Shown here piece after piece: positions 1-61,277 of a stretch of 64,000 nt of DNA. This DNA comes from Azolla caroliniana. Taxonomy: Eukaryota; Plantae; Polypodiophyta. Numbering within the stretch: position 1 is the stretch's first letter; each line of letters opens with the position of its first letter. The translations under genes were made by a program, and so were the position numbers. Below the pieces are notes generated by a model. It was not told the origin of the DNA, searched no databases, and was given only the letters and a program-made list of their open reading frames with translations. The stretch lies in assembly GCA_043228905.1 (NCBI GenBank), contig JBHGNT010000058.1, forward strand, positions 98,067-162,066, given 5' to 3'.

Positions 1-78
1 CGTTGATGCTTGCGCAATATATAAATTATATTTATTACTAATCAATGATTGCAATATTAAAAAGTACAGAAGATATGA

Positions 79-151
79 TCCATTGTAGTCTAGTTGGTTA
101 GGATACTCGGCTTTCATCTAAGAGACCCGTGTTCAAGTCCCGGCAATGGAA
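79..151 (+). pseudogene. tRNA-Glu-like copy, TTC anticodon variant (representative)
   Basis: 73 nt, acceptor stem TCCATTG/CAATGGA, A box TAGTCTAGTTGG, T loop GTTCAAGTC. The anticodon stem and T stem are damaged. Confidence 0.85.
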
Positions 152-3100
152 ACGACAATATCATATATTAAATTTCTGACGCATATGATGTTTTAATTGT
201 TTGATAACTCAAAAACTCAAGATTATGTTTGAAGGATTGATGATGAACTTTCCTCGATCAAGATTCCAAAAATACGCATTGATTGTCAAATAATGGTGAC
301 TTCTCGATTATCATTGCACCATGTTTGTTTATTTGAACGAAAGCACTTGAATATTACATTAACCAATTCATTTACTAAATGAATTCCATTGTAGTCTAGT
401 TCGTTCAGATCCTTGTTTTTTACACAAGACTCCCGGGTACAACAATAGGCATTGGAAAAACTAGATACATTATAGATGATGAGGTAATGTCACATCGATA
501 AAAACCGTTGAAATTATTAAATATTAAAAACGAGAATGTGGTTACGACAAATTAGTACACCGACAATTATAGTTTGGATAACTTGATAGAATTTCCAAAA
601 ATATGCATAGATTGTAGAATAATGGTGAACTCTCGATCCACATTGCACCATATTTCTTTATTTGAAGCAAAGCACTAGAGTATTACATTAACTAATTCAT
701 TTACTAAATAAATTACATTGTTTCCTAGTTGGTTCGGATCCTCATTTTTTTATGCATAGATTGCAGAATTATGGTCAACTATCGAGAGACCCGGGTTCAA
801 CTCCCACCAATAGAAAAGACAATATCATATATCATATTTTGTGACGCATGTCATGTGTTAAGTGTTCGATAACTGAAAAATTGAAGACCTAAAGTAGTTG
901 TTACAATAATGTACAATTAATAAAATAATCAATATTATGTTTGAAGGATTGATAAAGAACTATAGTTTGTTTTTTTTCTCCTAACATTAATTTCTAAACA
1001 TAATCCCATTATTCAATTAAAAGGAGAGGTGTCAAATGAAATTTGACATAACATTATGTATTTCGGAACAAGAAAAAGCAATATATTTAGTCGTGGTTAT
1101 TCCTCAACATCGTTACGACAATTATAGTTTGGGTAGCTTGATACAATTTCCAAAAATACACATAGATTGTAGAATTATAGTGAACTCTCGACGATCATTG
1201 CACCATGTTTCTTTATTTGAAGGAAGGCACTAGAATATTACATTAACTAATTCATTTACTCAATGAATTCCATTGTAGTCTAGTTGGATCAAATCCTTGT
1301 ATTTTACACGAGACTCTCGGGTACATCAATAGGCATTGGGAAAACTATATACATCATAGATCATGATATATTGTGGCATTGATAAAAACCCTTGAAATTA
1401 TTAAATCTTAACAACGAGAGTGTGTTAGAATAATCCTCTGTTTCTCATTGATGCTTGTGAAATATATAAATATTATGTAGTATTACTCAATGACTGCAAT
1501 ATTAAAAAGTGCAAAAGATGTGATCCATCATAGTCTAGTTGTTTAGGATACTCGGCTCTCACCCGAGAGACCTGGGTTCAACTTCCGGCAATGAAAACGA
1601 CAATATCATATATTAAATTTCCCACGCATATCATGTGCTAACTATTGGATAATTTAGAAACTCAAGATCAAGATCTAAAGTAGTTGTTACAATAATGTAC
1701 AATTAACAAAATAAACAATATTATGTCTGAAGGATTGATGAGTAACTTTACCTTGATTTTTTTCTCGTAACATCAATTTCTAAAGTTAATCCAATTATTC
1801 AATTAATGGTAGAGGTTTCAAATGAAATTGGACAAAACATTATGTTTTTGAGGATAACAAGAAGCAGTAGATTTAGGTGGGGTTACTACACCAACAATTA
1901 TAGCTTGGATAACTCGATACAATATAAAACAATACGCAGAATAATGGTCAACTGTCGACAAGCATTCCACATGTTTCTTTATTTGTAGCAAAGCACTAGA
2001 ATAGTACATTAACTAATTCATTTGATAAATGAATTCCATTGTAATCAAGTTGCCTCGGATGCTTGCTTTTTACCCGAGACGCACGACTATAAGTAGATAT
2101 ATCATATATTATGAGTTAATGTGGCATCGATAAAAACCCTTGAAATTATTAAATCTTAAAACCGAAAGTGTGTTAGAAAAATATTATATTATTGCAAAAT
2201 ATTTATATTATTTTTTTCTAATCAATGATTGCAATAATAGAAAGCAGAGAAGATGTAATCCATTGTAGTCTAGTTGGTTAGAATACTCCGCTCCTACCCA
2301 AGAGAACCGGGTTAAACTCCCATCAATGGATACATCATAGCTCATGAGTTAATTTGGCATCGATAGAAATCCGTAAAATTATTAAATCTTAAAAACGAGA
2401 CTGTGTTAGAATAATCCTGTGTTTGTCGTAGATGCTTGCACAATATATAAATATTATTTATTTTTTTCTACTAACATGAATTTCTAAACTTAGTCCCATT
2501 ATTCAATTAATGGTACACCTTTCAAATGAAATTTGAGAAAACATTATGTTGTTCGATATGACAAGAAGAAGTATATTTAGTTCTGGTTATTCCACAACTT
2601 TTTTACAACAAATTATTTCTTTATTTCTAACAAAGGACTAAAAGTAAATATTTCCTATATCATGAGTTAATATGGCATTGATAAAAACCCTTGAAATTAT
2701 TAAATCTTAAAAACGACAGTGTGTTAGAATAATCATTAGTTTTTCGTTGATACCTGCGAAATATATTATTAATTTCTAATCAATGATAAAAAGATTAAAA
2801 AGCACACAAGATCTGATCTACGATAGTCTAGTTGGTTAGGATACTCGGCCCTCACCTGAGAGACCCAGGTTCAACTCCCGGCAATGGAAACGATAATATC
2901 ATATATTAAATTTCTGATGCATATCAGGTGTTAACTCTTTGATAACTCAGAAACTGAAGTCCTAAAGTAGGTGTTACAATAATGTACAATTAACAAAATA
3001 ATCAATTTTATGTTTCAACGATTCATGACGAACTTTACTTTGATTTTCTTCTCCGAACATCAATTTCTAAACTTCATTCCATTATTTGATTTATGGTAGA

Positions 3101-6100
3101 GGTTTCAAATGAAATTGGACAAAATATTATGTTGTTCGGGACAACAAGAAGAAGAAAATATTATGTGGTTACTCCTCAACATTATTACGATAAATTAGTA
3201 CACCAACAATTATAGTTTAGATAACTTGATTCAATTTCAAACAATATGCATAGATTGCAGAATAATGTTCAACTGTCGACAAGCATGATACCATTTTTCT
3301 TTATTTGTAGCATAGCACTAGAATAGTACATTCACTAACTCATTTACTAAATGAATTCCATTGTAATCAAGTTGCCTCGAATCGTTAATTTTTACCCGAG
3401 ACGCGTGGGTACAAGTACATGCATAGGAAAAACTAGACACATCATAGCTCATGAGTTAGTTTGGCATCGATAAAAACCGATGAACTTATTAAATCTTAAA
3501 ATCGAGAGTGTGTTAGAATAATCCTCAGTTGCTCGTTGATGCTTGCGCAATATATAAATATTATTTATTACTAATCTAAATAATGTACAATTAACAAAAT
3601 AATCATTATTATGTTTGAAGGATTGATGACAAACTTTGCTTTCATTTTTTTCTCCTAACATCAGTTTCTCCTAAACTTAATCCCATTATTTAATTGCACC
3701 AAACATTATGTTTTTCGGGAAAACAAGAAGCAGTACATCCAGTTGTGGTTATTCCTAAACATTGTTACAATAAATTAGTAAACCAACAAGTATAATTTTG
3801 ATAATTTGATACAATTTCAAAAAATACTCATAGATTGCAAAATACTGGTCAACTGCCGACAAGCATTGCACCATGTTTCTTTATTTGTAGCAATGCACTA
3901 GAATAGTACATTAACTAATTCATTTACTCAATGAATTCCATTCTAATCAAGTTGCCTCGACTCATTCATTTTCACCCGAGATGCGCGGGTACATGCACAA
4001 GCATAGGAAAAACTAGATACATCATAGATCATTAGTTAATTTGGCATCGATAAAAACCCGTAAAATTATTAAATCTTAAAAACCAGAGTGTGGTAGAATA
4101 ATCCTCTGTTTCTTGTTGATGCTTCCGCAATATATAAATATTATTTATTACTAATCAATGATTACAATATAAAAAAGTGCACAAGATGTGATCCATTGTA
4201 GTCTAGTTGGTTAGAATGCTTGGCTCTCACACGAGAGACCCAGGTTCAACTCCTGGGAATAGATTGCACCAACAATTATAGTTTGGATAACTTGATACAA
4301 TTTCAAACAATACACGTAGATTGCAAAATAATGGTCAACTGTAGTAAAGCACTCGAATATTACATTAACTAATTCATTTATTAAATGAACTCCACTATAG
4401 TCTAGTTCGTTCATATACTTGTTTTTTACAGGAGACTCCCGGGTACAACAATTGGCATGGGAAAAACTAAATACATCATAGATCATGAGTTTACACAAGA
4501 CTCTCGGGTACAACATTATGTTGTTCGGGAAAACAAGAAGCGGTAGATTTGGTTGCGGTTATTCTTGAACATTGTTATGACAAATTAGTACAGCAACAAT
4601 TATACTTTGGATCACTTGATACAATTTCAAACAATACGCGTAGATTGTAGAATAATGGTCAATTGTCGATGACTATTGCACTATGTTTCTTTATTTGTAA
4701 CAAAGGACTACAGTGGTACATTAACTAATTCATTAACAAAGGACTAGAATGGTACATTGTAATCAAGTTGCCCCGGCTACAAGTAGATATATCATATATC
4801 ATGAGTTAATGTGGCATCGATAAAAACCGTTGCAATTGTTAAATCCTAAAAACGATACTGTGTTAGAATAATCCTCAGTTTTTCATTGATGCTTGCACAA
4901 TATATAAATATTATTTATTTCTAATCAATTATTGCAATATTAAAGAGCATACAAGCTGTGATACATTGTACTCTAGTTGGTTAGGATGCTCGGCTCTCAC
5001 TCGAGAGACCCGTGTTGAACTCCCGGCAATGGAAAAGACAATATCATATATCAAATTTTGCGACACATGTCATGTGTGTACTGTTTGATAACTCAAAAAG
5101 TCAACCCCTAAAGTAGTTCTTAAAATAATGTACAATTAACAAAATAATTAATATTATGTTTGAAGGATTGACAAAGAAGTTTACTTTAATTTTTTTCTCC
5201 TAACATCAATTTCTAAACTTAATCCCATTATTCGATTAATGGTAGAGGTTTCGAATGAAATTGGACCAAACATTATGTTGTTCGGGAAAACAAGAAGCAA
5301 TATATTCAGTTGTGGTTATTCCTCAACATTGTTACGATAAATCAGTACACCAACAATTATAGTTTTGATAACTTGATACAATTTCAAAAAATACACATAG
5401 ATTGCAAAATACTGGTCAATTGTCGACAAGCATTGCAGTATGTTTCTTTATTTGTAGCAAAGCACTAGAATAGTACATTAACTAATTCATTTACTCCATG
5501 AATTCCATTCTAATCAAGTTGCCTCGACTCGTTCATTTTTGCCCGAGATGCGCGGGTACAACCACATGCATAGGACAAACTAGATACATCATAGATCATG
5601 AGTTAATTTGTCATCGATAAAAACCCGTCAAATTATTAAATCTTAAAAACGAGAGTGTGTCAGAATAATTTTCTGTTTCTTGTCGATGCTTGCGCAAAAT
5701 ATGAATATTCTTTATTACTAATCAATGATTGCAATATTAAAAAGTGCACAAGATGTGATCCATTCTAGTCTAGTTGGTTAGAATGCTTGGCTCTCACATG
5801 ACAGACCCGGGTTCAACTCCTAGGAATAGATTGCACCAACAATTATAGCTTGGATAACTTGATACAATTTCAAACAATACGCATTGATAGCAGAATAATG
5901 GTCAACTGTAGTAAAGCACTCGAATATTACATTAACTAATTGATTTACTAAATGAATTCCACTATAGTCTAGTTGGTTCAGATACTTGTTTTTTACACGA
6001 GACTCCCGGGTACAACAATTGGCATGGGAAAAACTAAATACATCATAGATCATGAGTTAATATATCATCGATAAAAACCCTTGAAATTATTAAATCTTAA

Positions 6101-15100: not shown

Positions 15101-15639
15101 TCATATATTACATTTCCGACGCATATCATGTGTTATCTGTTTGATAACTGAATAACTCAAGACCTAAAGTATCTGAGTTAATATCGCATCGATGGAAACC
15201 GTTGAAATTATTAAATCTTAAAAACGAGAGTGTGTTAGAATAATCCTCTGTTTCTCGTTGATGCCTGTGCAATATATAAATATTATTTATTACTAATCAG
15301 TGATTGCAATATTGAAAAGTACACAAGATATGATCCATTGTAGTCTAGTTGGTTAGGATACTAGGCTCTCACATGAGATAGCCGGGTTCAACTCCCAACA
15401 ATGGAAACGACAATATCATATATTAAATTTTTGACTCATATGATGTTTTAATTGTTTGATAACTCAAAAACGCAAGATTATGTTTGAAGGATTGATGACG
15501 ATCTTTCCTCCATCAACATTCCAAAAATACGCATAGCTTGTCGAATAATGATTAATTCTCGATTAGCATTGCACCATGTTTGTTTATTTGAATGAAAGCA
15601 CTTGAATATTACATTAACCAATTCATTTACTAGTTGAAT

Positions 15640-15712
15640 TCCATTGTAGTCTAGTTCGTTCAGATCCTTGTTTTTTACACAAGACTCCCGGGTACAACAA
15701 TAGGCATTGGAA
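15640..15712 (+). pseudogene. Degenerate second tRNA-Glu copy of the monomer (representative)
   Basis: Aligns without gaps over 73 nt to the near-intact copy 255 bp downstream. B box lost (GGTACAACAA); T6 run in the anticodon arm. Confidence 0.85.
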
Positions 15713-15894
15713 AAACTAGATACATCATAGATGATGAGGGAATGTCGCATCGATAAAAACCGTTGAAATTATTAAATCTTAAAAATGAGAGTGTGTTAGA
15801 ATAATCCTCAGTTTCTCGTTGATGCTTGCGCAATATATAAATATTATTTATTACTAATCTATGATTGCAATATTAAAAACTACACAAGATATGA

Positions 15895-15967
15895 TCCATT
15901 GTAGTCTAGTTGGTTAGGATACTCGGCTCTCACCCGAGAGACCCGGTTTCGACTCTCGGCAATGGAA
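15895..15967 (+). tRNA. tRNA-Glu(CTC)-like copy, probably a pseudogene (representative of ~65)
   Basis: Acceptor TCCATTG/CAATGGA, anticodon arm CTCGG-CTCTCAC-CCGAG intact. Three differences from the array consensus in the T arm, including G53>T. Confidence 0.75.
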
Positions 15968-18900: not shown

Positions 18901-20835
18901 ATGTGATCCAATGTAGTGTAGCTGGTTAGGATACTCGGCTCTCACCCAAGAGACTCGGGTTTAATTCCCAGAAATGGAAATGACAATATCATATATTAAA
19001 CTTCCGACGCATATCATGTGTTAATTGTTTGATAACTTAGAAACTCAAGACCTAAACTAGGTGTTACAATAATGTACAATTAACAAAATAACGTTTGAAG
19101 GATTGATGATGAACTTTACTTTGATTTTTTTCTCCTAACATCAATTTGTAAACTTAATCCCATTATTCGATTAATTCTAGAGATTTCAAATGAAATTGGA
19201 CCAAACATTACGTTGTTCGGGACAACAAGAAGCAGTATATTTAGTTGTGGTTATTACTCAACATTGTTACGATAAATTAGTACACCAATAATTATAGGTT
19301 GGATAACTTGATACAATTTCGAACAATACATATACATTGCAAAATAATGGTCAACTGTCGAATAATGGTGAATTCTCGATGAGGATTGCACCATGTTTCT
19401 TTATTTGAAGTAAAGCACTAGAATATTATATTAGCTAATTCATTTACTAAATGAATTCCATTGTAGTCTAGTTGGTTCAGATCCATGATGTTTACACGAG
19501 ACTCCCGGGTACAGCAATTGGCATGGGAAAAACTAGATACAACATAGATCATGAGTTAATATTGCATCGATGGAAACCGTTGAAATTATTAAATATTAAA
19601 AACGAGAGTGTCTTAGAGTAATCCTGTGTTTCTCATTGATACTTACGGATTATATAAATATTATTTATTACTAATCAATGATTGCAATCTTGAAAAGTAC
19701 ACAAGGTATGATCCATTGTAGTCTAGTTGGTTAGGATACTAGGCTCTCACATGAGATAGCCGGGTTCAACTCCCAACAATGGAAACGACAATATCATATA
19801 TTAAATTTCCGACGCATATGATGTTTTAATTGTTTGATAACTCAAAAACTCAAGATTATGTTTGAAGGATTGATGACGATCTTTCCTCCATCAACATTCC
19901 AAAAATACGCATAGATTGTCGAATAATGGTGAATTCTCGATTAGAATTGCACCATGTTTCTTTATTTGAACGAAAGCACTTGAATATTACAATAACCAAT
20001 TCTTTTACTAAATGAATTCCATTGTAGTCTAGTTCGTTCAGATCCTTGTTTTTTACACAAGACTCCCGGGTACAACAATAGGCATTGGAAAAACTAGATA
20101 CATCATAGATGATGAGGTATTGTCGCATCGATAAAAACTGTTGAAATTATTAAATCTTAAAAACGAGAGTTTGTTAGAATAATCCTCAGTTTCTCGTTGA
20201 TGCTTGCGCAATATATAAATATTATTTATTACTAATCTATGATTGCAATATTAAAAACTACACAAGATATGATCCATTGTAGTCTAGTTGATTAGGATAC
20301 TCGGCTCTCACCCGAGAGACCTGGGCCGGGTTCAACTCCCGGCAATGGAAACGACAATATCATATATTGAATTTCCGATGGATATCATGTGTTAACTATT
20401 TGATAACTCAAAAAATAAAGACCTAAACTAGACAATTAACAAAATAATCAATATTATGTTTGAAGGATTGATGGCGAACTTTACTTTAATTTTTTTCTCC
20501 TAACATCAATTTCTAAACTTAATCCCATTATTCGATTAATGGTAGAGCTTTCAAATGAAATTGGACAAAACATTATGTTGTTCGAGACAACAAGAAGAAG
20601 TATATTTGGTTGTGGTTATTCGTCAACATTGGTACGACAAATTAGTACACCAACAATTACAGTTGGGATAACTCGATACAATTTCACACAATACGCATAG
20701 AATACAAAATAATGTTCAACTGTCGACAAGCATTGCACCATGTTTCTTTATTTGTAGCAAAGCACTAGAATAGTACATTAACTAATTCATTTACTCAATG
20801 TATTCCATTGTAATCAAGTTGCTTCGAATCGCTGA

Positions 20836-44000: not shown

Positions 44001-46934
44001 TTATTGAATTAATAGTAGAGGTTTCAAATGAAATTTGACAAAACATTATGTTGTTTGGGACGAAAAGAAGCAATATATTCAGTCGTGGTTATTTATCAAC
44101 ATGGTTACGACAAATGACAGTGTGTTAGAATAATTGTCAGTTTTTCGTTGATGGTTGCCCAATATATAAATATTATTTATTTCTAATCAATGATTGCAAT
44201 ATTAAAAAGCACACAAGATGTGATCCATTGTAGTCTACTTGGTTAGATTACTCAGCTCTCACCCGAGAGACCCGGGTTCCACTCCTGGTAATGGAAAACA
44301 CAATATCATATATCAAATTTTGAAACAATATCATGTGTTAATTGTTTGATAACTCAAAAACTCAAGACCTAAAGTAGGTGTTCCAATAATGTACAATTAA
44401 CAAAATAATCAATATTATGTTTGAAGGATTGATGACGAACTTTGCTTTGATTTTTTTCTCCTAACATCAATTTCTAAACTTAATCCCATTATTCAATTAA
44501 TAGTATAGGTTTCAAATGAAATTTGACAAAACATTATGTTGTTCGGGACAAGAAGAAGCAGTATATTTAGTCGTGGTTATTCCTCAACATTGTTACGATA
44601 AATTAGTACACCAAGAATTATAGTTTGGATAACTTGATACAATTTCTAAAAATACACATAGATTGTCGAATAATGGTGAATTCTCGATAAGCATTGCACC
44701 ATGTTTCTTTATTTGAACAAAAGCACTTGAATTATAGTTTGGATAATTGTTTTTTACACAAGACTACTGGCTAAAACAATAAGCATTAGAAAAACTAGAT
44801 ACATCATACATCATGACGTAATGTCGCATAGATAAAAACCATTCAAATTATTTTAATCTTAAAAACGAGAGTGTGTTAGAATAATCCTCAGTTTCTCGTT
44901 GATGCTTTCGCAATATATCAAGATTACTTATTACTAATCTATGATTGCAATATATCTTTACACAAGATAGGATCTATTCTAGTCTAGTTGGTTAGGATAC
45001 TCTGCTTTCACCCGAGAGACCCGTGTTCAACTCCCGGCAATGGAAATGACAAAATCATATTATAAATTTCTAACGCATACCATGTGTTAACTATTTGATA
45101 ACACAAAAACTCAAGACCTAAAGGAGTTGTTACAATAATGTAAAATTAACAAAATAATCAATATTATGTTTGAAGGATTGATGACAAACTTTAGTTTGGT
45201 TTTTATAGTTTGGATAACTTGATAGAATTTCCAAACATACGCATAGATAGTAGAATAATGTTGAACTCTCGATCAAGATTGCACCATAGTTTTTTATTTG
45301 AAGAAAAGCACTAGAATATTACATTAACTAATTCATTTACTAAATGAATTCTATTGTAGTCTAGTTGGTTTGGATCCGTGTTTTTCACACGAGACTCCTG
45401 GGTACAACAATAGGCATTGGAAAAACTAGATACGTCATAGATCATGAGGTAATGTTGCATCGATAAAAACCCTTGAAAGTATTTAATCTTAAAAACGAGT
45501 GTGTGTTAGAATAATCCTCAGTTCCTCGTTGATGCGTGCGCAATATATAAATATTAGTTATTACTAATCTATGATTGCAATATTAAGAAGTATATAAGAT
45601 AGGATTCATTGTAGTCTAGTTGGTTAGGATACTCGGCTTTCACCTCAGAGATCCGGGTTCAACTCCTGGCAATGGAAACGAGTATATCATATATTAAATT
45701 TTCGACTCATAGCATGTGTTAACGGTTTGATAACTCAAAAACTCAAGACCTAAAGTAGATGTTCCAATAATGTACAATTAACAAAATAATCAATATTATG
45801 TTTGAAGGATTGATGACGAAGTTTGCTTTGATTTTTTTCTCCTAACATCAATTTCTAAAGTTAATCCCATTATTCAATTAATCATAGAGGTTTCAAATGA
45901 AATTTGACAAAACATTATGTTGTTCGGGACAAGAAGAAGAAATATATTTTGTCGTGGTCATTTCTCAACATGGTTACGACAAATTAGTACACTGACAATT
46001 ATGGTTTGGATAACTGGATAGAATTTCCAAAAATACGCATAGATTGTAGAATAATGGTGAACTCTCAATCAACATTGCACCAAATTTCTTTATTTGAAGC
46101 AAACCACTAGAATATTATGTTTGAGGTATTGAAAATGTACTTTACTTTAATTTTTTTCTCCTAACATTAATTTCTAGACTTAATCCCATTATTCGATTAA
46201 TGGTATAGGTTTCGAATGAAATTGCACCAAACATTATGTTTTTCGGGAAAACAAGAAGCAATACATCCAGTTGTGGTTATTCCTAAACATTGTTACGATA
46301 AATTAGTAAACCAACAAGTATAGTTTGGATAATTTGATACAATTTCAAAAAATACTCATAGATTGCAAAATACTGGTCAACTGTCGACAAGCATTGCACC
46401 ATGTTTCTTTATTTGTAGCAATGCACTAGAATAGTACATTAACTAATTCATTTACTCAATGAATTCCATTCTAATCAAGTTGCCTCGACTCATTCATTTT
46501 CACCCGAGATGTGCGGGTACAACCACATGCATAGGAAAAACTAGATACACCATAGATCATGAGTTAATTTGGTATCGATAAAAACCCATGAAATTATTAA
46601 ATCTTAAAAACGAGAGTGTGTTAGAATAATCTTCTGTTTCTTGTTGATGCTTGCGCAATATATGAATATTCTTTATTACTAATCAATGATTGCAATATAA
46701 AAAAGTGCACAAGATGTGATCCATTGTAGTCTAGTTGGTTAGAATGCTTGGCTCTCACACGAGAGACCCGGGTTCAACTCCTAGGAATAGATTGCACCAA
46801 CAATTATAGCTTGGATAACTTGATACAATTTCAAACAATACGCATTGATAACAGAATAATGGTCAACTGTAGTAAAGCACTCGAATCTTACATTAACTAA
46901 TTCATTTACTAAATGAATTCCACTATAGTCTAGT
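38011..46934 (+). repeat. tRNA-Glu-derived satellite, block 4
   Basis: Resumes in register after the solo LTR; ends at the CTAGT target-site duplication. Confidence 0.95.
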
Positions 46935-47342
46935 TGTCCGGAATAGTACTAAAGCAGAGATGGAATTAGTGCTAAGAAGAACAGTACTATTAGTACTAAG
47001 AGGACGGGACTGCGTAAGATTTCCGAGAGAGAGGAAGTGAGAAGAGGAGAGAGAGAGATAGGATGATGACAGCAGCTCTTATATTATATGAAAGATAAGT
47101 ACAAATTCGCTAAGAGGCTTAAGACTGGTGTTGAACCAATTTGGTTCAAAACAATGCCTTGTGCCTCCTTTTATAGTGTTTTTAGGAATAATCCTGAAGC
47201 TTCTAGAATGTTCCAGAGAGATCTGGAATATACATCAATTTTCTATGATAAAGCATAAATAAAAATAGTATCCTACAAATTACAATTCATAGTCTAATGG
47301 TAAGAGCTCGACCCATGGTTCGAGTCTTGCCATATCATGACA
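46935..47342 (-). repeat. 3' LTR of the chromovirus (408 bp)
   Basis: TG...CA termini; direct repeat of 53600-54023 with about 15 substitutions and one 16-bp indel (counted by eye). Confidence 0.95.
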
Positions 47343-47345
47343 CTA

Positions 47346-47355
47346 TCTCCCCCTT
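47346..47355 (-). promoter_or_regulatory. Polypurine tract
   Basis: AAGGGGGAGA on the minus strand, 3 nt before the 3' LTR. Confidence 0.85.
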
Positions 47356-48140
47356 AAAGACGACGAGTGGAACGAGTCGGCGCTAATTGTGGACCGGGTT
47401 TGTCCGGATACTTTCGGTGGAAATCGGCAAGAAGATCTTGTGCATTGGCAACATGCTGGACGGGTTCCCAAGTACGTTCGCTCAGACTATAACCGAACCA
47501 ATTGACCAAGTAATAAAGTTTGTTGCGAACAAGTTTGGAATCGAGGATGGCAGCAACTTCATACTTCGGGCCGGTGTCCAACTCCAGCGGGGGTGGCAGT
47601 GGTGTCACACGATCGGGAATGGTGTTTGCTTTATAAGGTTCAAGAAGAGAACAATGGAAAACCGGATGTATCTGAAGCTACAAAGGGAGATCAAGGCGGA
47701 AGGAGACATCATTAATCTTACCCGTAATACGGAAGGGACCGAGTCGTCGATAATCCAACTTGTCGCACGGTCGAGTAGTCTTGATGTGACGACGTAAGAG
47801 CCATACTCGATCTCCGATGGCAAAAGAGGAGGGAATTCGATGACGATACGCATAAGTCTTTTGTGTGAGTTGAGCATGACGAAGGTGAGTAGAGAGATCC
47901 ATCTGGATCTTGCGTAGCCTCTCCAAATGATCCTCGGCACGAGGGTTGGTAGGTAGCTCCGGAGTGTCGATCACCGACCAGCGAGGATGGAAACCGGTAT
48001 AAGAGAAAAATGGGGAGACCCGAGTCGAGGAGTGAATAGCATTATTATACGCAAACTCCGCAAAGTGGAGAATCTCGGCCCAATCGTCCCGTTGATAACT
48101 CAGCGTTTGGTTTGTTCGTTCCGCTTGCCCGTCGGTCTGA
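47354..48140 (-). pseudogene. Duplicated integrase C-terminus plus chromodomain
   Basis: QTDGQAERTNQ, GPF and YEVAAILDSK...YYLVNWFGY...TWEP motifs; about 19 differences from 48932-49718. Confidence 0.9.
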
Positions 48141-48930
48141 TACGTCATAGATCATGAGGTAATGTCACATCGATAAAAACCCTTGAAACTATTTAATCTT
48201 AAAAACGAGTGTGTGTTAGAATAATCCTCAGTTCCTCGTTGATGCGTGCGCAATATATAAATATTAGTTATTACTAATCTATGATTGCAATATTAAGAAG
48301 TACATAAGATAGGATTCATTGTAGTCTAGTTGGTTAGGATACTCGGCTTTCACCTCAGAGATCCGGGTTCAACTCCTGGCAATGGAAACAAGTATATCAT
48401 ATATTAAATTTTCGACTCATAGCATGTGTTAACGGTTTGATAACTCAAAAACTCAAGACCTAAAGTAGATGTTCCAATAATGTACAATTAACAAAATAAT
48501 CAATATTATGTTTGAAGGATTGATGACGAAGTTTGCTTTGATTTTTTTCTCCTAACATCAATTGCTAAAGTTAATCCCATTATTCAATTAATCATAGAGG
48601 TTTCAAATGAAATTTGACAAAACATTATGTTGTTCGGGACAAGAAGAAGAAATATATTTTGTCGTGGTCATTTCTCAACATGGTTACGACAAATTAGTAC
48701 ACTGACAATTATAGTTTGGATAACTGGATAGAATTTCCAAAAATACGCAAACCACTACAATATTATGTTTGAAGTATTGAAAATGTACTTTACTTTAATT
48801 TTTTTCTCCTAACATTAATTTCTAGACTTAATCCCATTATTCGATTAATGGTATAGGTTTCGAATGAAATTGCACCAAACATTATGTTTTTCGGGAAAAC
48901 AAGAAGCAGTACATCCAGTTGTGGTTATTC
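48141..48930 (+). repeat. Satellite segment inside the chromovirus; copy of ~45431-46285
   Basis: Shares diagnostic variants with 45431-46285 (TACGTCATAG, GATGCGTGCG, GGATTCATTG, CACCTCAGAGATCCGGG, ACATCCAGTTG). Confidence 0.92.
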
Positions 48931-48931
48931 C

Positions 48932-50248
48932 TTAAAGACGACGAGTGGAACGAGTCGGCGCTAATTGTGGACCGGGTTTGTCCGGATACTTTCGGTGGAA
49001 ATCGGCAAGAAGATCTTGTGCATTGGCAACATGCTGGACGGGTTCCCAAGTATGTTCGCTCAGAGTATAACCGAACCAATCGACCAAGTAATAAAGTTTG
49101 CTGCGAACAAGTTTGGAATCGAGGATGGCAACAACTTCATACTTCGGGCCGGCGTCCAACTCCAGCAGGGGCGGCGGTGGTGTCACACGATCCGGAATGG
49201 TGTTTGCTTTATAAGGTTCAAGAAGAGAACAATGGAAAACCGGATGTATCTGAAGCTACAAAGGGAGATCAAGGCGGAAGGAGACATCATTAATCTTACC
49301 CGTAATACGGAAGGGACCGAGTCGTCGATAATCCAACTTGTCGCATGGTCGAGTAGTCTTGATGTGATGACGTAAGAGCCATACTCGATCTCCGATGGCA
49401 AAAGAGGAGGGAATTCGATGACGATCCGCATAAGTCTTTTGTGTGTGTTGAGCATGACGAAGGTGAGTAGAGAGATCCATCTGGATCTTGGGTAGCCTCT
49501 CCAAATGATCCTCGGCACGAGGGGTGGTAGGTAGCTCCGGAGTGTCGATCACCGACCAGCGAGGATGGAAACTGGTATAAGAGAAAAATGGGGAGACCTG
49601 AGTCGAGGAGTGAATAGCATTATTATACGCAAACTCCGCAAAGTGGAGAATCTCGGCCCAATCGTCCCGTTGATAACTCAGCGTTTGGTTTGTTCGTTCC
49701 GCCTGCCCGTCGGTCTGAGGATGGTTGCCGGAGGAGAGGTTGCAGGAGACCTTGAGCATCTTGAAGAGATGCTGCCAAAATTTGGAGACGAATTGCGGGC
49801 CTCGGTCACTGATAATACTGTCTGAGAGGCCATGATGCCGAAATACCTCACGCATAACAAGAGCGGCGGTTTCCTCGCTAGTGATGGCTTTAGTACACGG
49901 CACAAAATGTGCCATCTTCGTGTATCGATCGACGACGGTTAGGATAGCATCGAACCCCTTCGAAACCGGCCGATCTGTGATAAAATCAAGACAAATAGAC
50001 TGCCACGGCCTACTTGGAATCGGTAAGGGTTCCAACAAGCCATATGGATGGTGTCGTGGCATCTTTGCTCGGCAGCAAGCATCACAGGTATGAACGTAGT
50101 CATCAACAAAACGCCGCATGTGGGGCCACCAAAAAGATCGCTGCCCTAGCTCCATCGTCTTAGTACTACCGAAATGTCCCGCGTATGGGTGTCGTGACAA
50201 TGTTGGACGATTTGAAGGCGACAGGAGCAATCGGGGACATATACGCAC
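48932..50248 (-). pseudogene. Integrase (zinc-binding HHCC region, DDE core, GPF motif) plus chromodomain
   Basis: GHFG..KT, CDACCR, ICLDFIT, IISDRGPQF, PQTDGQAER, YEVVAILDSK..YYLVDWFGY..TWEP; interrupted by a stop. Confidence 0.93.
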
Positions 50249-50626
50249 TTTTTAAAGAATAACAAACCATCATGATATTCGAATTGTCAGTAGTCAATAC
50301 CTGGTTGTTGAGACCGAGAACAGGATGCCCGAGAAGTATCAATGTGCGCCAAGATGTCTTGAGCAAAACTATCCGTCTTCAAGGTTGCACGTATGTCATC
50401 GGTAATCCGTGAATCCATCGGGGTGTGAAAAATCCGCGTCGTGTGCAATCATGTTGGTCCCAAGATTACTTGCTTTTGATTATCAAATGTTGCGTCACAA
50501 GGACGAGGTGCAAGATAGTGCATCTGCTTTTCCTTGATGCTTCCCCGGTCGATATGTGATTTTGAAGTCGAAACGCGTGAGGAATTGCGCCCATCGAGCT
50601 TGCCGTCGATTTAGTACGCGAGCGTT

Positions 50627-51718
50627 CTAAAAATAAGCAAGATTTTTATGATCGCTAAAGACAATGACCTGATGTGGAGAGCCCTCTAAGAGATGCCGCC
50701 ATTGTACAAATGAATCCACGATGGCTAATAACTCCTTGTCATGTATTTCGTAGTTGATTTCTACGACATCGAATTTGCGCGAATGGAAAGCCACCGGATG
50801 CAACTCTTCTTTATCGCCTTGTTGAGAAAGGATGCTACCGAGGGCGAAATCTGATGTGTCGGCCTCCATGATGAATGGTTTGCTTGTATCCACATGAGCT
50901 AGAATCGGTGCTGATGTAAAGGCCATATCTGCTTCTATGGACCAAAGAAATGCTTGGCCCTTCTTCGTAAGTTGTGTGAGAGGTAAAATAATCTTCGAGT
51001 AATCCTGTATAAACTTACGGTAGAAGTTAGCAAAACCTAGAAAACATTGTACATCTCGTATCGACTGTGGAATTTGCCACTCTAGTACAGTTTGGATTTT
51101 AGCTGGATCCATGGTGATGCCCTTTGAGGAGATGACGTAGCCTAGAAATTCCACTTGCTTGCAGCCAAAGCTACATTTTTCTAGCTTGGCATAAAGACCA
51201 TTCTCACGGAGTCGCTTTCGTACTAATAGTACATGAGAATCGTGCTCTTCCTGGGACTTCGAATAAATCAATAGATCATCCAGATAAATGATCAAACAGA
51301 TATCCAAGAGGTCTCTGAATATATCATTTGCCATGTGTTGGAAGACTGCGGGTGCATTGGTTAGGCCAAACGGCATAACAGTATACTCGAAATGCCCATA
51401 CCACGTGCGAAAGGCGGTCTTCCACTCATCTCCCGGTCGGATCTGCACGAGGTTATACGCTCCTCATAGGTCGATTTTAGTAAAAAACTTGGCACCATTA
51501 ACTCGCTCTAAAAGACTTGATATAAGAGGAAGTGCATACCTATTCCGGATGGTGACTTTATTCAATCCGTGGTAATCAACGACAAGACGAAGTGAGCCAT
51601 CTTTCTTCTTGACAAAGAAGATGGGTGCACCGACCGGAGATTTCGAATGGCGGATGAACCCTTTTGCCAAGTTCTCCTCTATGTAGGCTCGAAGGACTTC
51701 TAACTCGGTGGGTGACAA
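50627..51718 (-). pseudogene. Reverse transcriptase plus RNase H
   Basis: [66 protein letters not shown]; stop codon at ~51464. Confidence 0.95.
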
Positions 51719-51923
51719 GTTGTAAATTGGTCCCCATGGTGGCTCGGTTCCTGGTTGTAAATCGATGGGACAGTCATAGGGATGGTGATGAGGAAGGGTA
51801 CCGGCTTTTACCTTGTCAAATATATCGGCATAAGGATGCTATTTTGCCGGAAGTTGTACTGAGGAGTCCTTCTTGGGGTGAAATGGTCGAAACTTGGTGA
51901 GTTGATTCTTGGGGTGGTCGATA

Positions 51924-52379
51924 TCAGACTTCTCTTGTTCTCCAATCTATGGCTGGATTATGTAATTCAAACCAAGGTAATCCTAGGACAATGGGATGCT
52001 CTGGACTACTAATTATATTAAATGATATTACACACACAAAACTACCTAGGACAACCTGAATGGGTTCTGATTCTTCTACAATATTCCCGGAAGCAATGGG
52101 ATGACCATCAATGACTACTACAGATGGAGGACAAGGAAGATTTCTTAAGGATATCTGAGAAGCTTGGGCAAAATTTCGATCCATGAAAAAGGAATTAGCT
52201 CTGGAATCTAAAAGTGCTAGGACGGGTACTGGGGGAGTACTTGTAGTACTAACAATGACTTGGGCTAGGAACACATTGCTAACTTGCTTGGAAGGAATGG
52301 AACCACTAATGGGCTGTACAGATCTAGGGTTGCTGTCCAACCAAACGGCTCCTATTTTGGCTGGACTCAATCGTTTAAC
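51924..52379 (-). pseudogene. Aspartic protease region (start of pol)
   Basis: ALLDSRANSFF (DSG motif mutated to DSR) and IVLGLPWFELHNPAIDW. Confidence 0.88.
52335..52379 (-). promoter_or_regulatory. Putative -1 ribosomal frameshift signal (gag to pol)
   Basis: G TTA AAC heptamer just before the gag stop; the -1 frame is the protease frame; 6-nt spacer then an 11-bp stem GTCCAGCCAAA/TTTGGTTGGAC. Confidence 0.75.
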
Positions 52380-53525
52380 TCTTCATCTAATTGACTAAGG
52401 ATTTCAAATTTATTTGAGATACTTGGGCTATTAGTACTATGAATACTATCAAACACTCTATTAGTACTATTAATACTATCAGACACTCCTGAGGGAAGAA
52501 TTGACTCAGGTTTAGTACAGGCTACAATTTGATTTACCTGTCTTCTTGGCTTATGGGGACAATTGATTGCGATATGCCCTGGTCCACCGTAATAAAGACA
52601 TAATCGATTTGCACATCGTCGTTGCTTTTCTTCTTTCGATAACGGGCCGCGTCGACGCATGGTATCGATCTCCATTGGTGTCGAAGTATTTGCTTGAGGT
52701 ATGTCTCGTGCAAACGGTCTAGCCGCGACTGCGGCATAAGTGGGCTCCAGCCTAGCGCGTGGTATCTGTAATTGACGTTCCGAACGCCGTTCGAAAAGGC
52801 GGTTGTCACATCGGACCACTCGACTGATTGCCTCCGTAATAGACTTTGGTTCTTCGGGGAAGGTTAGAAGTAGATCTTTGACATCATTTCGCAGACCATA
52901 GCGAAACTGCTCCATTAGTGCTTGATCATCCGCCGCGTAGGCGGAAAGCGAGTAGGCGGAAATCCGCCGCGTAGGCCGAGGCTGGACGATCGCCTTGACG
53001 CAATCGCCGGATCTTGTTGATCGTCGTCCTGATGTTGTCGGTGTCTCCAAAGCAGGCTTTGAACTCACTAATAAAATCTTCAAAGTTATTAAGCAAGGGC
53101 GATTGTTTTTCTAGAAGCGGAGTGAACCATGCTAAGGCTGAGCCACTAAGCAACGTGCCTATTAAGCCGACTCGGGATGCATCAGTGGGGTATCGGGAAA
53201 GATGCATTTGGAGGACTAATCGTACCTGATTAAGGAATCCCCTGAATTGCGATCGCGTTCCATCAAATTTCACAAGAACTCCAATCTTCGGCTCTTTATG
53301 AAATCCTTGGGGACTTGATCCTTGTTGTTGCAATGCCGCTTCGAGTTGTTGCACCCGTAACACTAACTCCCCATGTTGTTGCTGCGTTTGTTGCTTTTCT
53401 AGAGCGATTTGTTGCAGATCCCCTATCAGCAGTTGGTTTTCTTGTTCTAGGGCAACAAACTTTTCTTTTCGGCACTGTAACTCGGAGAAAACGGATTGAT
53501 ATTCTTGGGCGCTAACAGTAGCCAT
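52367..53525 (-). pseudogene. Gag (frameshifted)
   Basis: KFDGTRSQFRGFLNQ, LLSGSALAWF, LRQG, TPMEID and a decayed zinc knuckle CLYYGGPGHIAINC; ATG at 53525; split over two frames near 52930-52960. Confidence 0.9.
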
Positions 53526-53585
53526 AGTAGAGGGAAAAGGGTATGAGGATGAGGGAGAACGACAAGTAGGCTGGAGGAAAGAAAA

Positions 53586-53597
53586 AAATTGGTTCAA
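53586..53597 (-). promoter_or_regulatory. Putative self-priming primer-binding site
   Basis: TTGAACCAATTT, 2 nt after the 5' LTR, with no TGG. It is complementary to AAATTGGTTCAA at 53807-53796 on the same strand within the LTR. Confidence 0.75.
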
Positions 53598-53599
53598 AC

Positions 53600-54023
53600 T
53601 ATCAAGAATAGTACTAAAGCAGAGATGGAATTAGTACTAAGAAGAACAGTACTATTAGTACTAAGAGGACGGGACTGCGTAAGATTCCCGAGAAAGAGGA
53701 AGTGAGAAGAGGAGAGACAGAGATAGGATGATGACATCAGCTCTTATATTATATGAAAGATAAGTACAAATCGGCTAAGAGGCTTAAGACTGGTGTTGAA
53801 CCAATTTGGTTCAAAACAATGCCTTGTGCCTCCTTTTATAGTGTTTTTAGGAATAATCTTGAAGCTTCTAGAATGTTCCAGAGAGATCTGGAATATACAT
53901 CAATTTTCTATGATAAAGAATAAATAAAAATAATACCCTACAAATTACAATTCATAGTCTAATGGTAAGAGCTCGACCCATGTAGCATAAGGTCATGGGT
54001 TCGAGTATTGCCATATCATGACA
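53600..54023 (-). repeat. 5' LTR of the chromovirus (424 bp)
   Basis: Direct repeat of 46935-47342; TATAAAA at 53840-53834 on the minus strand; inner terminus mutated. Confidence 0.95.
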
Positions 54024-54267
54024 CTAGTTGGTTCAGATACTTGTTTTTTACACGAGACTCCCGGGTACAACAATTGGCATGGGAAAAACTAAATACATCA
54101 TAGATCATGAGTTAATATCTCATCGATAAAAACCCTTGAAATTATTAAATCTTAAAAACGAGAGTGTGTTGGAATAATCCTCAGTTTCTTGTTAATACTT
54201 GCACAATCTATAAATATTATTTATTACTAATCAATGATTGCAATATTAAAAAGTACACTACATATGA

Positions 54268-54340
54268 TCCATTGTAGTCTAGTTGGTTAGGATACTTGGC
54301 TTTCACCCGAGAGACTCGGGTTTAACTCCCGGCAATGGAA
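54268..54340 (+). pseudogene. tRNA-Glu-like copy, TTC anticodon variant
   Basis: All four stems can still pair (with G-U), but the T loop reads TTTAACT (C56>T), which damages the B box. Confidence 0.8.
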
Positions 54341-56971: not shown

Positions 56972-59900
56972 CGTTGATGCTTGCGCAATATATAAATTAT
57001 ATTTATTACTAATCAATGATTGGAATATTAAAAAGTACAGAAGATATGATCCATTGTAGTCTAGTTGGTTAGGATACTCGGATTTCACCTGAGAGACCTG
57101 TGTTCAAGTCCCGGCAATGGAAACGACAATATCATATATTAAATTTCTGACGCATATGATGTTTTAATTGTTTGATAACTCAAAAACTCAAGATTATGTT
57201 TGAAGGATTGATGATAAACTTTCCTCGATCAAGATTCCAAAAATACGCATTGATTGTCAAATAATGGTGAATTCTCGATTATCATTGCACCATGTTTGTT
57301 TATTTGAAAGAAAGCACTTGAATATTACATTAACCAATTCATTTACTAAATGAATTCCATTGTAGTCTAGTTCGTTCAGATCCTTGTTTTTTACACAAGA
57401 CTCCCGGGTACAACAATAGGCATTGGAAAAACTAGATACATTATAGATGATGAGGTAATGTCGCATCGATAAAAACCATTGAAATTATTAAATATTAAAA
57501 ACGAGAATGTGGTTACGACAAATTAGTACACTGACAATTATAGTTTGGATAACTTGATAGAATTGCCAAAAATATGCATAGATTGTAGAATAATGGTGAA
57601 CTCTCGATCCACATTGCACCATATTTCTTTATTTGAAGCAAAGCACTAGAATATTACATTAACTAATTCATTTACTAAATAAATTCCATTGTTGCCTAGT
57701 TGGTTCGGATCCTCATTTTTTTACGCATAGATTGCAGAATTATGGTCAACTATCGAGAGACCCAGGTTCAACTCCCACCAATAGAAAAGACAATATCATA
57801 TATCATATTTTGTGACGCATGTCGTGTGTTAAGTGTTCGATAACTGAAAAATTGAAGACATAAAGTAGTTGTTACAATAATGTACAATTAACAAAATAAT
57901 CAATATTATGTTTGAAGGATTGATAAAGAACTATAGTTTGATTTTTTTCTCCTAACATTAATTTCTAAACTTAATCCCATTATTCAATTAAAAGGAGAGG
58001 TGTCAAATGAAATTTGACATAACATTATGTATTTCGGGACAAGAAAAAGCAATATATTTAGGCGTGGTTATTCCTCAACATCGTTACGACAATTATAGTT
58101 TGGGTAGCTTGATACAATTTCCAAAAATACGCATAGATTGTAGATTTATAGTGAACTCTCAATGATCATTGCACCATGTTTCTTTATTTGAAGCAAGGCA
58201 CTAGAATATTACATTAACTAATTCATTTACTCAATGAATTCCATTGTAGTCTAGTTGGATCAGATCCTTGTATTTTACACGAGACTCCCGGGTACATCAA
58301 TAGGCATTGGGAAAACTATATACATCATAGATCATGATATATTGTGGCATTGATAAAAACCCTTAAAATTATTAAAGCTTAACAACGAGAGTGTGTTAGA
58401 ATAATCCTTTGTTTCTCATTGATGCTTGTGAAATATATAAATATTATCTATTATTACTCAATGACTGCAATATTAAAAAGTGCAAAAGATGTGATCCATC
58501 ATAGTCTAGTTGTTTAGGATACTCGGCTCTCACCCGAGAGACCTGGGTTCAACTTCCGGCAATGGAAACGACAATATCATATATTAAATTTCCCACGCAT
58601 ATCATGTGCTAACTATTGGATAATTTAGAAACTCAAGATCAAGATCTAAAGTAGTTGTGACAATAATGTACAATTAACAAAATAAACAATATTATGTCTG
58701 AAGGATTGATGAGTAACTTTACCTTGATTTTTTTCTCGTAACATCAATTTCTAAAGTTAATCCAATTATTCAATTAATGGTAGAGGTTTCAAATGAAATT
58801 GGACAAAACATTATGTTTTTGAGGATAACAAGAAGCAGTAGATTTAGGTGGGGTTACTACACCAACAATTATAGCTTGGATAACTCGATACAATATAAAA
58901 CAATACGCAGAATAATGGTCAACTGTCGACAAGCATTCCACATGTTTCTTTATTTGTAGCAAAGCACTAGAATAGTACATTAACTAATTCATTTGATAAA
59001 TGAATTCCATTGTAATCAAGTTGCCTCGGATGCTTGCTTTTTACCCGAGACGCACGACTATAAGTAGATATATCATATATTATGAGTTAATGTGGCATCG
59101 ATAAAAACCCTTGAAATTATTAAATCTTAAAACCGAGAGTGTGTTAGAATAATCCTCAGTTTTTCGTTGATGGTTGCGAAAAATATTTATATTATTTTTT
59201 TCTAATCAATGATTGCAATAATAGAAAGCAGAGAAGATGTAATCCATTGTAGTCTAGTTGGTTAGAATACTCCGCTCCTACCCAAGAGAACCGGGTTAAA
59301 CTCCCATCAATGGATACATCATAGCTCATGAGTTAATTTGGCATCGATAGAAATCCGTGAAATTATTAAATCTTAAAAACGAGACTGTGTTAGAATAATC
59401 CTGTGTTTCTCGTAGATGCTTGCACAATATATAAATATTATTTATTTTTTTCTTCTAACATGAATTTCTAAACTTAGTCCCATTATTCAATTAATGGTAC
59501 ACCTTTCAAATGAAATTTGAGAAAACATTATGTTGTTCGATATAACAAGAAGAAGTATATTTAGTTCTGGTTATTCCACAACTTTTTTACAACAAATTAT
59601 TTCTTTATTTCTAACAAAGGACTAAAAGTAAATATATCCTATATCATGAGTTAATATGGCATCGATAAAAACCCTTGAAATTATTAAATCTTAAAAACGA
59701 CAGTGTGTTAGAATAATCATTATTTTTTCGTTGATACCTGCGAAATATATAAATATTATTAATTTCTAATCAATGATAAAAAGATTAAAAAGCACACAAG
59801 ATCTGATCTACGATAGTCTAGTTGGTTAGGATACTCGGCCCTCACCTGAGAGACCCAGGTTCAACTCCCGGCAATGGAAACGATAATATCATATATTAAA

Positions 59901-60396
59901 TTTCTGATGCATATCAGGTGTTAACTCTTTGATAACTCAAAAACTGAAGTCCTAAAGTAGGTGTTACAATAATGTACAATTAACAAAATAATCAATTTTA
60001 TGTTTCAACGATTGATGACGAACTTTACTTTGATTTTCTTCTCCTAACATCAATTTCTAAACTTCATTCCATTATTCGATTAATGGTAGAGGTTTCAAAA
60101 GAAATTGGACAAAATATTATGTTGTTCGGGACAACAAGAAGAAGAAAATATTATGTGGTTACTCCTCAACATTATTACGATAAATTAGTACACCAACAAT
60201 TATAGTTTAGATAACTTGATTCAATTTCAAACAATATGCATAGATTGCAGAATAATTTTCAACTGTCGACAAGCATGATACCATTTTTCTTTATTTGTAG
60301 CATAGCACTAGAATAGTACATTCACTAACTCATTTACTAAATGAATTCCACTGTAATCAAGTTGCCTCGAATCGTTGATTTTTACCCGAGACGCGT
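56972..60396 (+). repeat. Higher-order duplicate of positions 1-3406
   Basis: Same order of monomer variants and deletion junctions; identical spurious ORFs at offset 56971 (1806 vs 58777). Confidence 0.95.
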
Positions 60397-61239: not shown

Positions 61240-61243
61240 CAGT

Positions 61244-61261: not shown

Positions 61262-61277
61262 GACGGGTGGCAAGGAG

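Follow-up and report, generated by a model that had tools for sequence, protein, structure and literature searches.

Clusters of tRNA genes have been described in several plants, among them the Ser-Tyr-Tyr (27 units) and Pro clusters of Arabidopsis, the Ile/Ala clusters of maize and the Gln clusters of barley (PMC7544208, PMC13437025, PMC13578239). These known clusters are silent and methylated. In animals, the satellite-like tandem family PolIII/TAN of the newt, with a unit descended from tRNA-Glu, was attributed to retroposition (Nagahashi et al. 1991, J Mol Biol 222:391, as cited in PMC12054243). Long tandem arrays of a Pol III promoter module are also known from the 5S-carrying Cassandra TRIM arrays (PMC7215508) and from SINE-derived satellites (PMC10702118), which are of mobile-element origin. 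Finally, masses of tRNA-like sequences and pseudogenes have been reported in fern and gymnosperm genomes, with over 10,000 of them in Azolla filiculoides (PlantRNA 2.0 preprint, 10.1101/2021.12.21.473619).

Here we analysed a window of 64,000 nucleotides from Azolla caroliniana (contig JBHGNT010000058.1), most of which is a tandem array of tRNA-Glu-derived monomers. Like the plant clusters, it appears to stem from a nuclear tRNA gene that was duplicated in tandem, in one orientation and along with its flanks, it forms a compact array of a single isotype, and it is probably silent and methylated. In the plant clusters the genes are intact, have kept their Pol III cis elements and are open to reactivation, whereas here all copies are pseudogenes. 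In addition, one of the two copies in the dimeric unit is long dead, and the array, with 60 kb in the window and probably more in all, is far larger and invaded by transposable elements; neither the Glu isotype nor the fern lineage is present in the lists of those papers. The locus shares with the newt family, as that family is cited, the satellite-like tandem arrangement and the descent from tRNA-Glu, but its copies have no CCA or tail and carry gene-type flanks. Unlike the Cassandra and SINE-derived arrays, it shows no sign of mobility. It resembles the PlantRNA 2.0 fern and gymnosperm sequences in its very many tRNAscan-type matches that are not true genes; that survey gives counts only and does not describe satellite organisation or isotype. 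In a literature search that covered few subscription journals, we found no paper on a tRNA-Glu satellite in ferns. The satellite itself is apparently undescribed, but its kind is known. Judged by its sequence, the array is most likely (with a probability of about 85%) an old satellite of tRNA pseudogenes, which would have no tRNA function today and be at most a passive heterochromatic repeat.

Results

The array of a 796-bp monomer occupies positions 1-60396 on the plus strand. It is truncated by the start of the window and interrupted by five insertions, and satellite-assigned bases make up 77% of this span. With blastn-short we found 63 tRNA-Glu(CTC)-like copies, all on the plus strand and with a modal spacing of ~795 bp (copy number is 62-63, and the per-copy lesion tallies below use n=62). 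ARAGORN called 33 tRNA genes in the array, all on the plus strand and nearly all Glu, while 46 matches to Rfam RF00005 reached the gathering score, again all on the plus strand, ~0.8 kb apart and of the Glu type. A consensus monomer of 796 bp was built from 22 full-length units. Its first 73 nucleotides, the copy that we call tRNA-A, form a perfect cloverleaf typed as tRNA-Glu(ctc) by ARAGORN, with an A box at 8-19, a B box at 52-62 and all invariant bases (U8, A14, G18G19, U33, G53, T54, T55 (pseudouridine 55), C56, A58 and C61). Head-to-tail, co-oriented units that extend over tens of kilobases and are related by descent with unequal exchange characterise this locus as satellite DNA. It also falls within the definition of a plant tDNA cluster, with five or more tDNAs inside 5 kb (PMC13437025), here of a single isotype and in the same orientation.

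The original prediction had described ~65 plus-strand copies, one per ~795-bp monomer, and a cloverleaf consensus with A and B boxes. The copy number, strand and spacing were reproduced closely, and our rebuilt 73-nt consensus was identical to the predicted one. The picture of one unit per monomer holds for the spacing, but only about one unit in three is collinear and full-length, and coverage is 77%. Likewise, the satellite does stop at 60396, as had been claimed, but this edge is an LTR-retroelement insertion and not the end of the array. The monomers have a mean pairwise identity of 81% and a median K2P distance of 0.199. A representative collinear full-length monomer lies at 25955-26750 (plus strand, 796 bp, 92% identity to the consensus), with its tRNA-A at 25955-26027.

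Every monomer carries a second, decayed tRNA-Glu relic, B, at consensus 542-614 (26496-26568 on the plus strand in the representative monomer), and the repeat unit is therefore a dimer of A and B. The consensus of B differs from that of A at 22 of 73 positions. The alignment score of the two is 58, compared to 20 +/- 2.8 (maximum 34) in the shuffled null, and the homology runs 17-20 nt into the trailer. An nhmmer profile made from 60 copies gave 62 matches at the A position and 63 at the B position. A local duplication of B is present in some units. We also considered a cryptic trimer of ~265 bp, and rejected it as unsupported when pairwise alignment, 100-mer self-scans and the nhmmer profile revealed no third relic at a recurrent monomer position.

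None of the 62 tRNA-A copies is intact, as each lacks at least one of the 21 pairs or an invariant base or has an indel. The commonest number of broken stem pairs per copy is 3-4, and most copies have 3-5. The copy nearest to the consensus (20273-20350, plus strand) has one substitution and a 5-nt insertion ahead of the T stem, and three copies have three substitutions. Among these best-preserved copies, the one at 15895-15967 (plus strand, Rfam 54.8 bits) has lost the G53-C61 pair through a change of G53. Even the top-scoring copy (54268-54340, plus strand, 58.1 bits) has its anticodon mutated to TTC and the invariant C56 changed to T. Overall, C56 is mutated in ~21% of the copies and U8 in ~16%. 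Both consensus boxes are kept in only 10 copies, and only 21 of the 62 are followed within 30 nt by a run of at least four T; the consensus itself offers just TTT at +21. Thus the complete cloverleaf with its invariant bases exists in the consensus and in no single copy.

The stems showed no covariation (83.7% of cells paired, compared to 84.1% in shuffles), and double-sided stem changes numbered 3 where 6.0 were expected, so that neither compensatory changes nor an excess of pairing was observed. Most lesions are common to several copies: variants carried by at least three copies account for 344 of the 435 occurrences (79%), only 43 are singletons, and the pair-breaking G24>A is present in 21 copies across the window. 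Dead copies therefore kept being amplified. The earlier claim that none of the best-preserved copies equals the consensus held for all 62, but the statement that each of them has several private lesions needs correcting, most lesions being shared. The proposed function is weakened by the lack of intact copies, the missing stem compensation, the amplification of stem-breaking lesions and the small number of copies that have both boxes or a T run.

Decay of the tRNA part is only slightly slower than that of the spacer (observed/expected ~0.7). The class-adjusted divergence of tRNA-A (0.70) is the lowest in the monomer and below that of all 506 spacer windows (minimum 0.74). In young duplicates, with differences polarised against the consensus, tRNA-A had 45 differences where 73.8 were expected. 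These low values could reflect weak residual constraint or gene conversion. However, in young duplicates the dead relic B showed a similar deficit (0.70), and tRNA-A came out no lower than about the 5th percentile among the windows; the least-mutated window covers -40 to +32 of tRNA-A.

Divergence by site class was 6% at A/T, 15.5% at CHH, 31% at CHG and 20% at CpG sites, and C/G sites thus mutate 2.6-5 times faster than A/T sites. Transitions make up 70% of the CpG changes. The C/G bias is consistent with methylated cytosines being deaminated in silent chromatin; the lack of gross CpG depletion (observed/expected 0.94 overall) counts against this reading. Strand ratios of complementary substitutions were 1.05-1.58 in the raw data and ~1.0-1.15 when each variant was counted once; strand asymmetry was therefore not informative as a footprint of transcription.

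The array has been reshaped repeatedly. Positions 1-3406 and 56972-60396 (both plus strand) are segmental duplicates with 97.75% identity over 3.4 kb, or ~4.5 units. The second copy ends at a retroelement insertion, and in the first the satellite runs on past the corresponding point. Duplicate blocks range from 0.5 to 3.4 kb and are 93-99% identical, and one of them copied chromovirus sequence along with the satellite. Many units are truncated by deletion or chimeric. Together, the multi-monomer duplications and the five insertions show continuing unequal exchange.

Four of the five insertions are clean retroelement insertions. In relic B, at consensus 578/579, lies a LINE-like element (20847-23321, minus strand); it has a zf-RVT ORF, and the T/A run at its left end corresponds to its poly-A tail. 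A probable solo LTR at 36718-38010, with termini TGTCG...CGACA and a 4-bp duplication ACGC through which the monomer is restored, sits in relic B at consensus 586-589. A Ty3/gypsy chromovirus at 46937-54026 (minus strand) encodes gag, RT, RNase H, integrase and a chromodomain, and interrupts, at consensus 556-559, a tRNA-like copy in the B position. Its LTRs (46941-47345 and 53606-54026) differ by a K2P of 0.030, which, as a measure of relative age, compares with the median of 0.199 between monomers. The chromovirus is rearranged inside: its integrase segments are duplicated (47352-48140 and 48930-49718), and a 797-bp piece of satellite (48139-48935) separates the two. The fourth, an LTR-type retroelement of a multi-copy family at 60397-64000 (plus strand, truncated by the window end), starts with TGTCG directly after consensus 589 in relic B and contains an intact 708-aa gag/aspartyl-protease-like ORF (61191-63317). 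The apparent edge of the array at 60396 is this insertion. The fifth insertion, an AT-rich (25% GC) non-satellite block at 27753-30632 with 147-161-bp tandem repeats, replaces consensus 259-484 and is therefore not a clean one. All four clean insertions lie in consensus 556-591, a 35-bp stretch of relic B, and none of the four in the equally GC-rich tRNA-A. The insertions, including the chromodomain chromovirus, together with the fast C/G sites and the dominant CpG transitions, indirectly suggest that the array is heterochromatic.

Discussion

In the order of events that this one window suggests, the first step would have been the tandem duplication of a functional nuclear gene for tRNA-Glu(CTC) together with its flanks, as the anatomy of the unit indicates. 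Copy B would then have decayed by ~30% while copy A, presumably under selection, stayed a perfect cloverleaf. Unequal crossing-over may next have amplified the 796-bp dimer into arrays of tens of kilobases. After amplification the copies would have escaped selection and diverged from the consensus by ~9%, with most changes at C/G sites. Damaged units were probably duplicated further in multi-unit blocks, deleted and recombined, and retroelements would have entered, some to be caught up in later duplications.

The start of this history, which the original prediction had put as a tRNA gene amplified into satellite DNA, is supported by the perfect-cloverleaf consensus and by the flanks. The family probably arose by gene duplication and not by retroposition, because there is no CCA, the consensus upstream of tRNA-A is AT-rich with CAA at -10 to -8, and the homology of A and B extends into the trailer. 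That the family was instead retroposed from a tRNA-Glu transcript or a tRNA-derived SINE and became tandem later, as proposed for the newt, has a precedent in the tRNA-Glu-derived family (Nagahashi et al. 1991, as cited in PMC12054243) and in known SINE-derived satellites (PMC10702118). Such an origin would predict a 3' CCA or an A-rich tail and no gene flanks. Neither CCA nor A-rich tail follows position 73, where the sequence most often goes on with ACGA, the upstream region resembles a plant tDNA promoter context, and the trailer sequence common to A and B is what gene duplicates would show. We therefore regard retroposition as very improbable. The array might instead be a reserve bank of tRNA-Glu genes that most tissues keep silent and that certain cells or conditions switch back on. 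This would agree with the consensus, which is a perfect tRNA with both boxes, with the 46 copies above the Rfam threshold and with the slight substitution deficit in tRNA-A and the upstream 40 bp; Arabidopsis clusters are indeed silent yet can be reactivated (PMC7544208, PMC12308677). However, these clustered tDNAs retain their cis elements (PMC7544208), and intact members with CAA upstream and poly-T downstream, as in the Arabidopsis SYY and Pro clusters, were not found here, the CAA being present in the consensus. With no intact copy among 62, mostly 3-5 broken pairs without compensation, frequent loss of C56 and U8, and T runs in only 21 copies, a reserve bank seems hardly credible.

Somewhat less remote, though still unlikely, is that the dead array continues to organise chromatin, through TFIIIC/Pol III at tRNA-A or through phased nucleosomes, and thereby makes relic B a hotspot for retroelement integration. 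The 35-bp stretch lies ~205-240 bp upstream of each tRNA-A. It received one LINE and three different LTR elements, whereas tRNA-A received none; both consensus boxes survive in ten copies, and in young duplicates mutations are fewest in a window across the start of tRNA-A. On the other hand, the four events are only partly independent. The monomer has just two runs of at least five T, and the LINE sits at one of them, a sequence preference may be common to the two TGTCG elements, and the substitutions are without strand asymmetry. Moreover, the known Pol III-targeted elements integrate beside tRNA genes and not inside them. We also think it quite improbable that the array is a centromeric or sex-chromosome-specific satellite of the species. 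It is long, AT-rich and invaded by transposable elements, with a chromodomain-bearing chromovirus inside, but the cores of active centromeres are homogenised, and the monomers here are only ~81% identical and heavily rearranged.

An old satellite of tRNA pseudogenes thus remains our preferred reading, and as such the locus would be a clear and dated case of a tRNA gene turning into satellite DNA in a large-genome plant: a gene is duplicated, one copy dies, the dimer is amplified, and neutral decay proceeds with continued unequal exchange. If the relic B hotspot occurred genome-wide, it would be a testable lead on the target-site choice of plant retroelements. Integration directed by tRNA genes is known from Ty1/Ty3 in yeast and from Dictyostelium elements. 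Should the hotspot reading be true, the array would offer a plant counterpart, with one site common to unrelated retroelements (LINE, chromovirus and other LTR families). Arrays of this kind also inflate tRNA gene counts, here by 46 Rfam-passing "tRNAs" in 60 kb, none of them intact, and should therefore be masked before tRNA repertoires are compared. They may explain part of the extreme numbers of tRNAs and pseudo-tRNAs in fern genomes.

A co-oriented array of tRNA-Glu-like copies

The original prediction described about 65 plus-strand units of 73 nt, one per monomer of ~795 bp. When one copy was used as query in blastn-short, 63 tRNA-Glu-like copies were found, on the plus strand only and with a modal spacing of ~795 bp, in good agreement with this description. 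ARAGORN called 33 tRNA genes in the window, on the plus strand throughout; 31 of these were tRNA-Glu, and the other two, with mutated anticodons, were called SeC and Arg. The Rfam tRNA model gave 46 matches at or above the gathering score in the window, all on the plus strand. A monomer consensus of 796 bp was derived from 22 full-length units. Its first 73 nt (tRNA-A) are identical to the previously proposed consensus, are called tRNA-Glu(ctc) by ARAGORN and, as predicted, form a complete cloverleaf (21 of 21 pairs standard) with both A-box and B-box regions. Satellite sequence makes up 77% of positions 1-60396, and its last base is indeed the predicted array end at 60396. The large co-oriented array is thereby confirmed, far beyond chance.

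The monomer carries a second, decayed tRNA-Glu copy at consensus 542-614 (relic B), which shares 51 of 73 positions with tRNA-A. Aligned to each other, the two score 58, compared to 20.1 +/- 2.8 (maximum 34) for shuffled queries. Their homology extends 17-20 nt into the 3′ trailer, as expected of duplicated genes. An nhmmer profile made from 60 tRNA-A copies matched the plus strand 62 times at the tRNA-A position and 63 times at the relic B position, with a few recombinant copies besides, and found no recurrent tRNA match at any third position of the monomer. The repeat unit is therefore a dimer of 541 + 255 bp. A cryptic trimer of ~265 bp was also considered and rejected, as neither the alignment against shuffles nor the nhmmer profile gave a statistic in its favour. 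Some units show a local duplication of relic B, and A/B chimeras are a minority of the copies at the relic B position.

Neither a CCA nor an A-rich tail was found after position 73, and the 100 bp preceding the tRNA are AT-rich and include CAA at -10 to -8. The latter approximately matches the CAA at -7 to -3 of Arabidopsis clustered tDNAs (PMC7544208). From these sequence features, the origin of the satellite looks gene-type rather than retroposed.

Decay of the tRNA-A copies

The original prediction stated that none of the best-preserved copies inspected equals the consensus, and this holds for all copies (0 of 62). The closest copy has one substitution and a 5-nt insertion, three copies have three substitutions each, and the median is ~7 of 73 positions. 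In none of the 62 copies are all 21 pairs and all invariant bases retained with no indel. Most commonly three to four stem pairs per copy are broken, and the invariant bases C56 and U8 are altered in ~21% and ~16% of the copies, respectively. Both boxes are in consensus form in only 10 copies, and only 21 of 62 have a run of at least four T within 30 nt downstream; the consensus itself has TTT at +21 and its next strong run, T7, at +154.

The anticodon is CTC in 44 of the 62 copies, TTC in 10 and another triplet in 8. The TTC copies start at positions 79, 6213, 6550, 43744, 44973, 45605, 48315, 54268, 54602 and 57050. They carry a shared C>T transition and do not form a separate tRNA-Glu(TTC) gene lineage. 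Annotation tools will label them as a different isoacceptor.

The lesions had also been described as private to each copy, which did not hold for most of them. In total, 344 of 435 lesion occurrences belong to variants found in at least three copies, and only 43 are singletons. Several shared variants break stem pairs and are spread across the whole window, namely G24>A (21 copies), G52>T (16), G7>A (13), G64>A (13) and G70>A (12). Since these lesions are common to many copies, damaged units were amplified, and tRNA function was thus not what drove the amplification.

To assess constraint on the tRNA part, covariation was examined in an alignment of 60 copies. Stem cells were paired in 83.7% of cases, compared to 84.1% after partner shuffling, double-sided stem changes numbered 3 vs 6.0 expected, and no compensatory changes were found. 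Divergence from the consensus was then adjusted by site class (A/T, CHH, CHG and CpG). The observed/expected ratio of tRNA-A was 0.70. Each of the 506 spacer windows of the same length (73 bp) scored higher, if only narrowly, their minimum of 0.74 coming from the region upstream of the tRNA. Relic B reached 1.47. In 16 young duplicate block pairs (identity at least 92%, differences polarised by the consensus), tRNA-A had 45 differences vs 73.8 expected, and the dead relic B was similarly short (27 vs 38.6). Here tRNA-A lies at about the 5th percentile of all 796 circular windows, and the minimum is reached by the window from -40 to +32 of tRNA-A. We take the deficit to be no more than a weak effect of context or conversion, rather than a sign of selection for tRNA function.

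Array dynamics and inserted elements

Full-length units have a mean identity of 81% (range 69-97%) and a median K2P of 0.199. Only about one unit in three is collinear; the others have internal deletions or partial duplications. Multi-unit blocks are repeated at 93-99% identity, such as 1-3406 and 56972-60396 (97.75%), 15171-16470 and 19548-20838, and 16945-18243 and 23649-24958. Divergence is 6% at A/T, 15.5% at CHH, 20% at CpG and 31% at CHG sites, so that C/G sites diverge 2.6-5 times as much as A/T sites, and transitions make up 70% of CpG-site changes. This spectrum is weakly compatible with methylated, silent DNA, the weakness being due to an overall CpG observed/expected ratio of 0.94. 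No convincing strand asymmetry of complementary substitution rates was found among the array copies.

A Ty3/gypsy chromovirus occupies 46937-54026 on the minus strand, with gag, RT, RNase H, integrase and a chromodomain (E = 3e-12). The K2P of 0.030 between its LTRs is roughly a sixth of that between monomers. Part of the element was later duplicated jointly with 797 bp of satellite, so the array went on rearranging after the insertion, and its duplication machinery acted on the chromovirus. The satellite piece inside the element (48139-48935) is 98.9% identical to 45429-46039, and the integrase 3′ segment is present on either side of it (47352-48140 and 48930-49718; 97.6% identical).

At the right boundary, the copies of the 3.4-kb duplication agree up to GACGCGT. 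Copy 1 then stays satellite, whereas copy 2, ending at 60396, changes to TGTCG, followed by an intact plus-strand ORF of 708 aa (61191-63317) with DUF4100 and weak aspartyl-protease similarity. What looks like the end is thus an inserted retroelement, past which the array probably continues outside the window. The ORF family is multi-copy, with relatives of up to 97% identity and a cluster of 57 member sequences, and its sequences suggest a recently active retroelement family.

At 27753-30632, 226 bp of a monomer are replaced by a different repeat with a GC content of 25%. It consists of tandem units of 147-161 bp round a short palindrome, AAATCCGATGCA...TGCATCGGATTT, and may be a second kind of satellite or an insert resembling a MITE or a Helitron.

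Clustering of insertions in relic B

All four clean retroelement insertions fall within consensus 556-591, a 35-bp stretch of relic B. The next tRNA-A follows ~205-240 bp downstream, and tRNA-A itself received none of the four. The chromovirus entered at monomer 556-559, where its flanks overlap by GTTG, and a LINE (20847-23321) at 578/579, at a T5 run. A probable solo LTR (36718-38010) lies at 586-589, where an ACGC duplication restores the monomer. The right-flank LTR element with a gag/protease ORF (60397-64000) starts with TGTCG just after 589. CCGG-rich minisatellites were observed near the 5′ ends of both TGTCG-type elements (37044-37339 and 60477-60575), with units of 23-77 bp in one and 23 bp in the other; the two are otherwise alike only over ~35 nt of terminal similarity.

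This clustering could reflect an insertion hotspot, and the rough scan-type probability of four sites in 35 of 796 bp is ~3e-4, for events that are not fully independent. It could also be produced by shared weak sequence preferences. LINEs favour T runs and the LINE sits at one, and the two TGTCG elements may have a common preference, which is also why independence is incomplete. The clustering is the basis for reading the locus as a dead array that would still impose a fixed chromatin architecture and guide integration to relic B, to which we assign a probability of only about one in ten.

Comparison with known systems

Tandem tRNA gene clusters have been described in plants, including Ser-Tyr-Tyr (27 units), Pro and Cys in Arabidopsis, Ile/Ala in maize and Gln in barley. 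These are silent, methylated and sometimes reactivated, but they have kept intact genes and cis elements (PMC7544208, PMC13437025, PMC13578239). In contrast, the genes of the Azolla caroliniana array are not intact, and it therefore does not belong to the functional tDNA clusters. A newt tandem family derived from tRNA-Glu, as cited in PMC12054243, has been ascribed to retroposition, and fern genomes contain thousands of tRNA-like pseudogenes (preprint 10.1101/2021.12.21.473619). Our literature search found no published description of this satellite. The array behaves like any decaying satellite. Tandem tRNA clusters and a tRNA-Glu-derived tandem family were already known; what is new is the 796-bp satellite of Azolla caroliniana itself.
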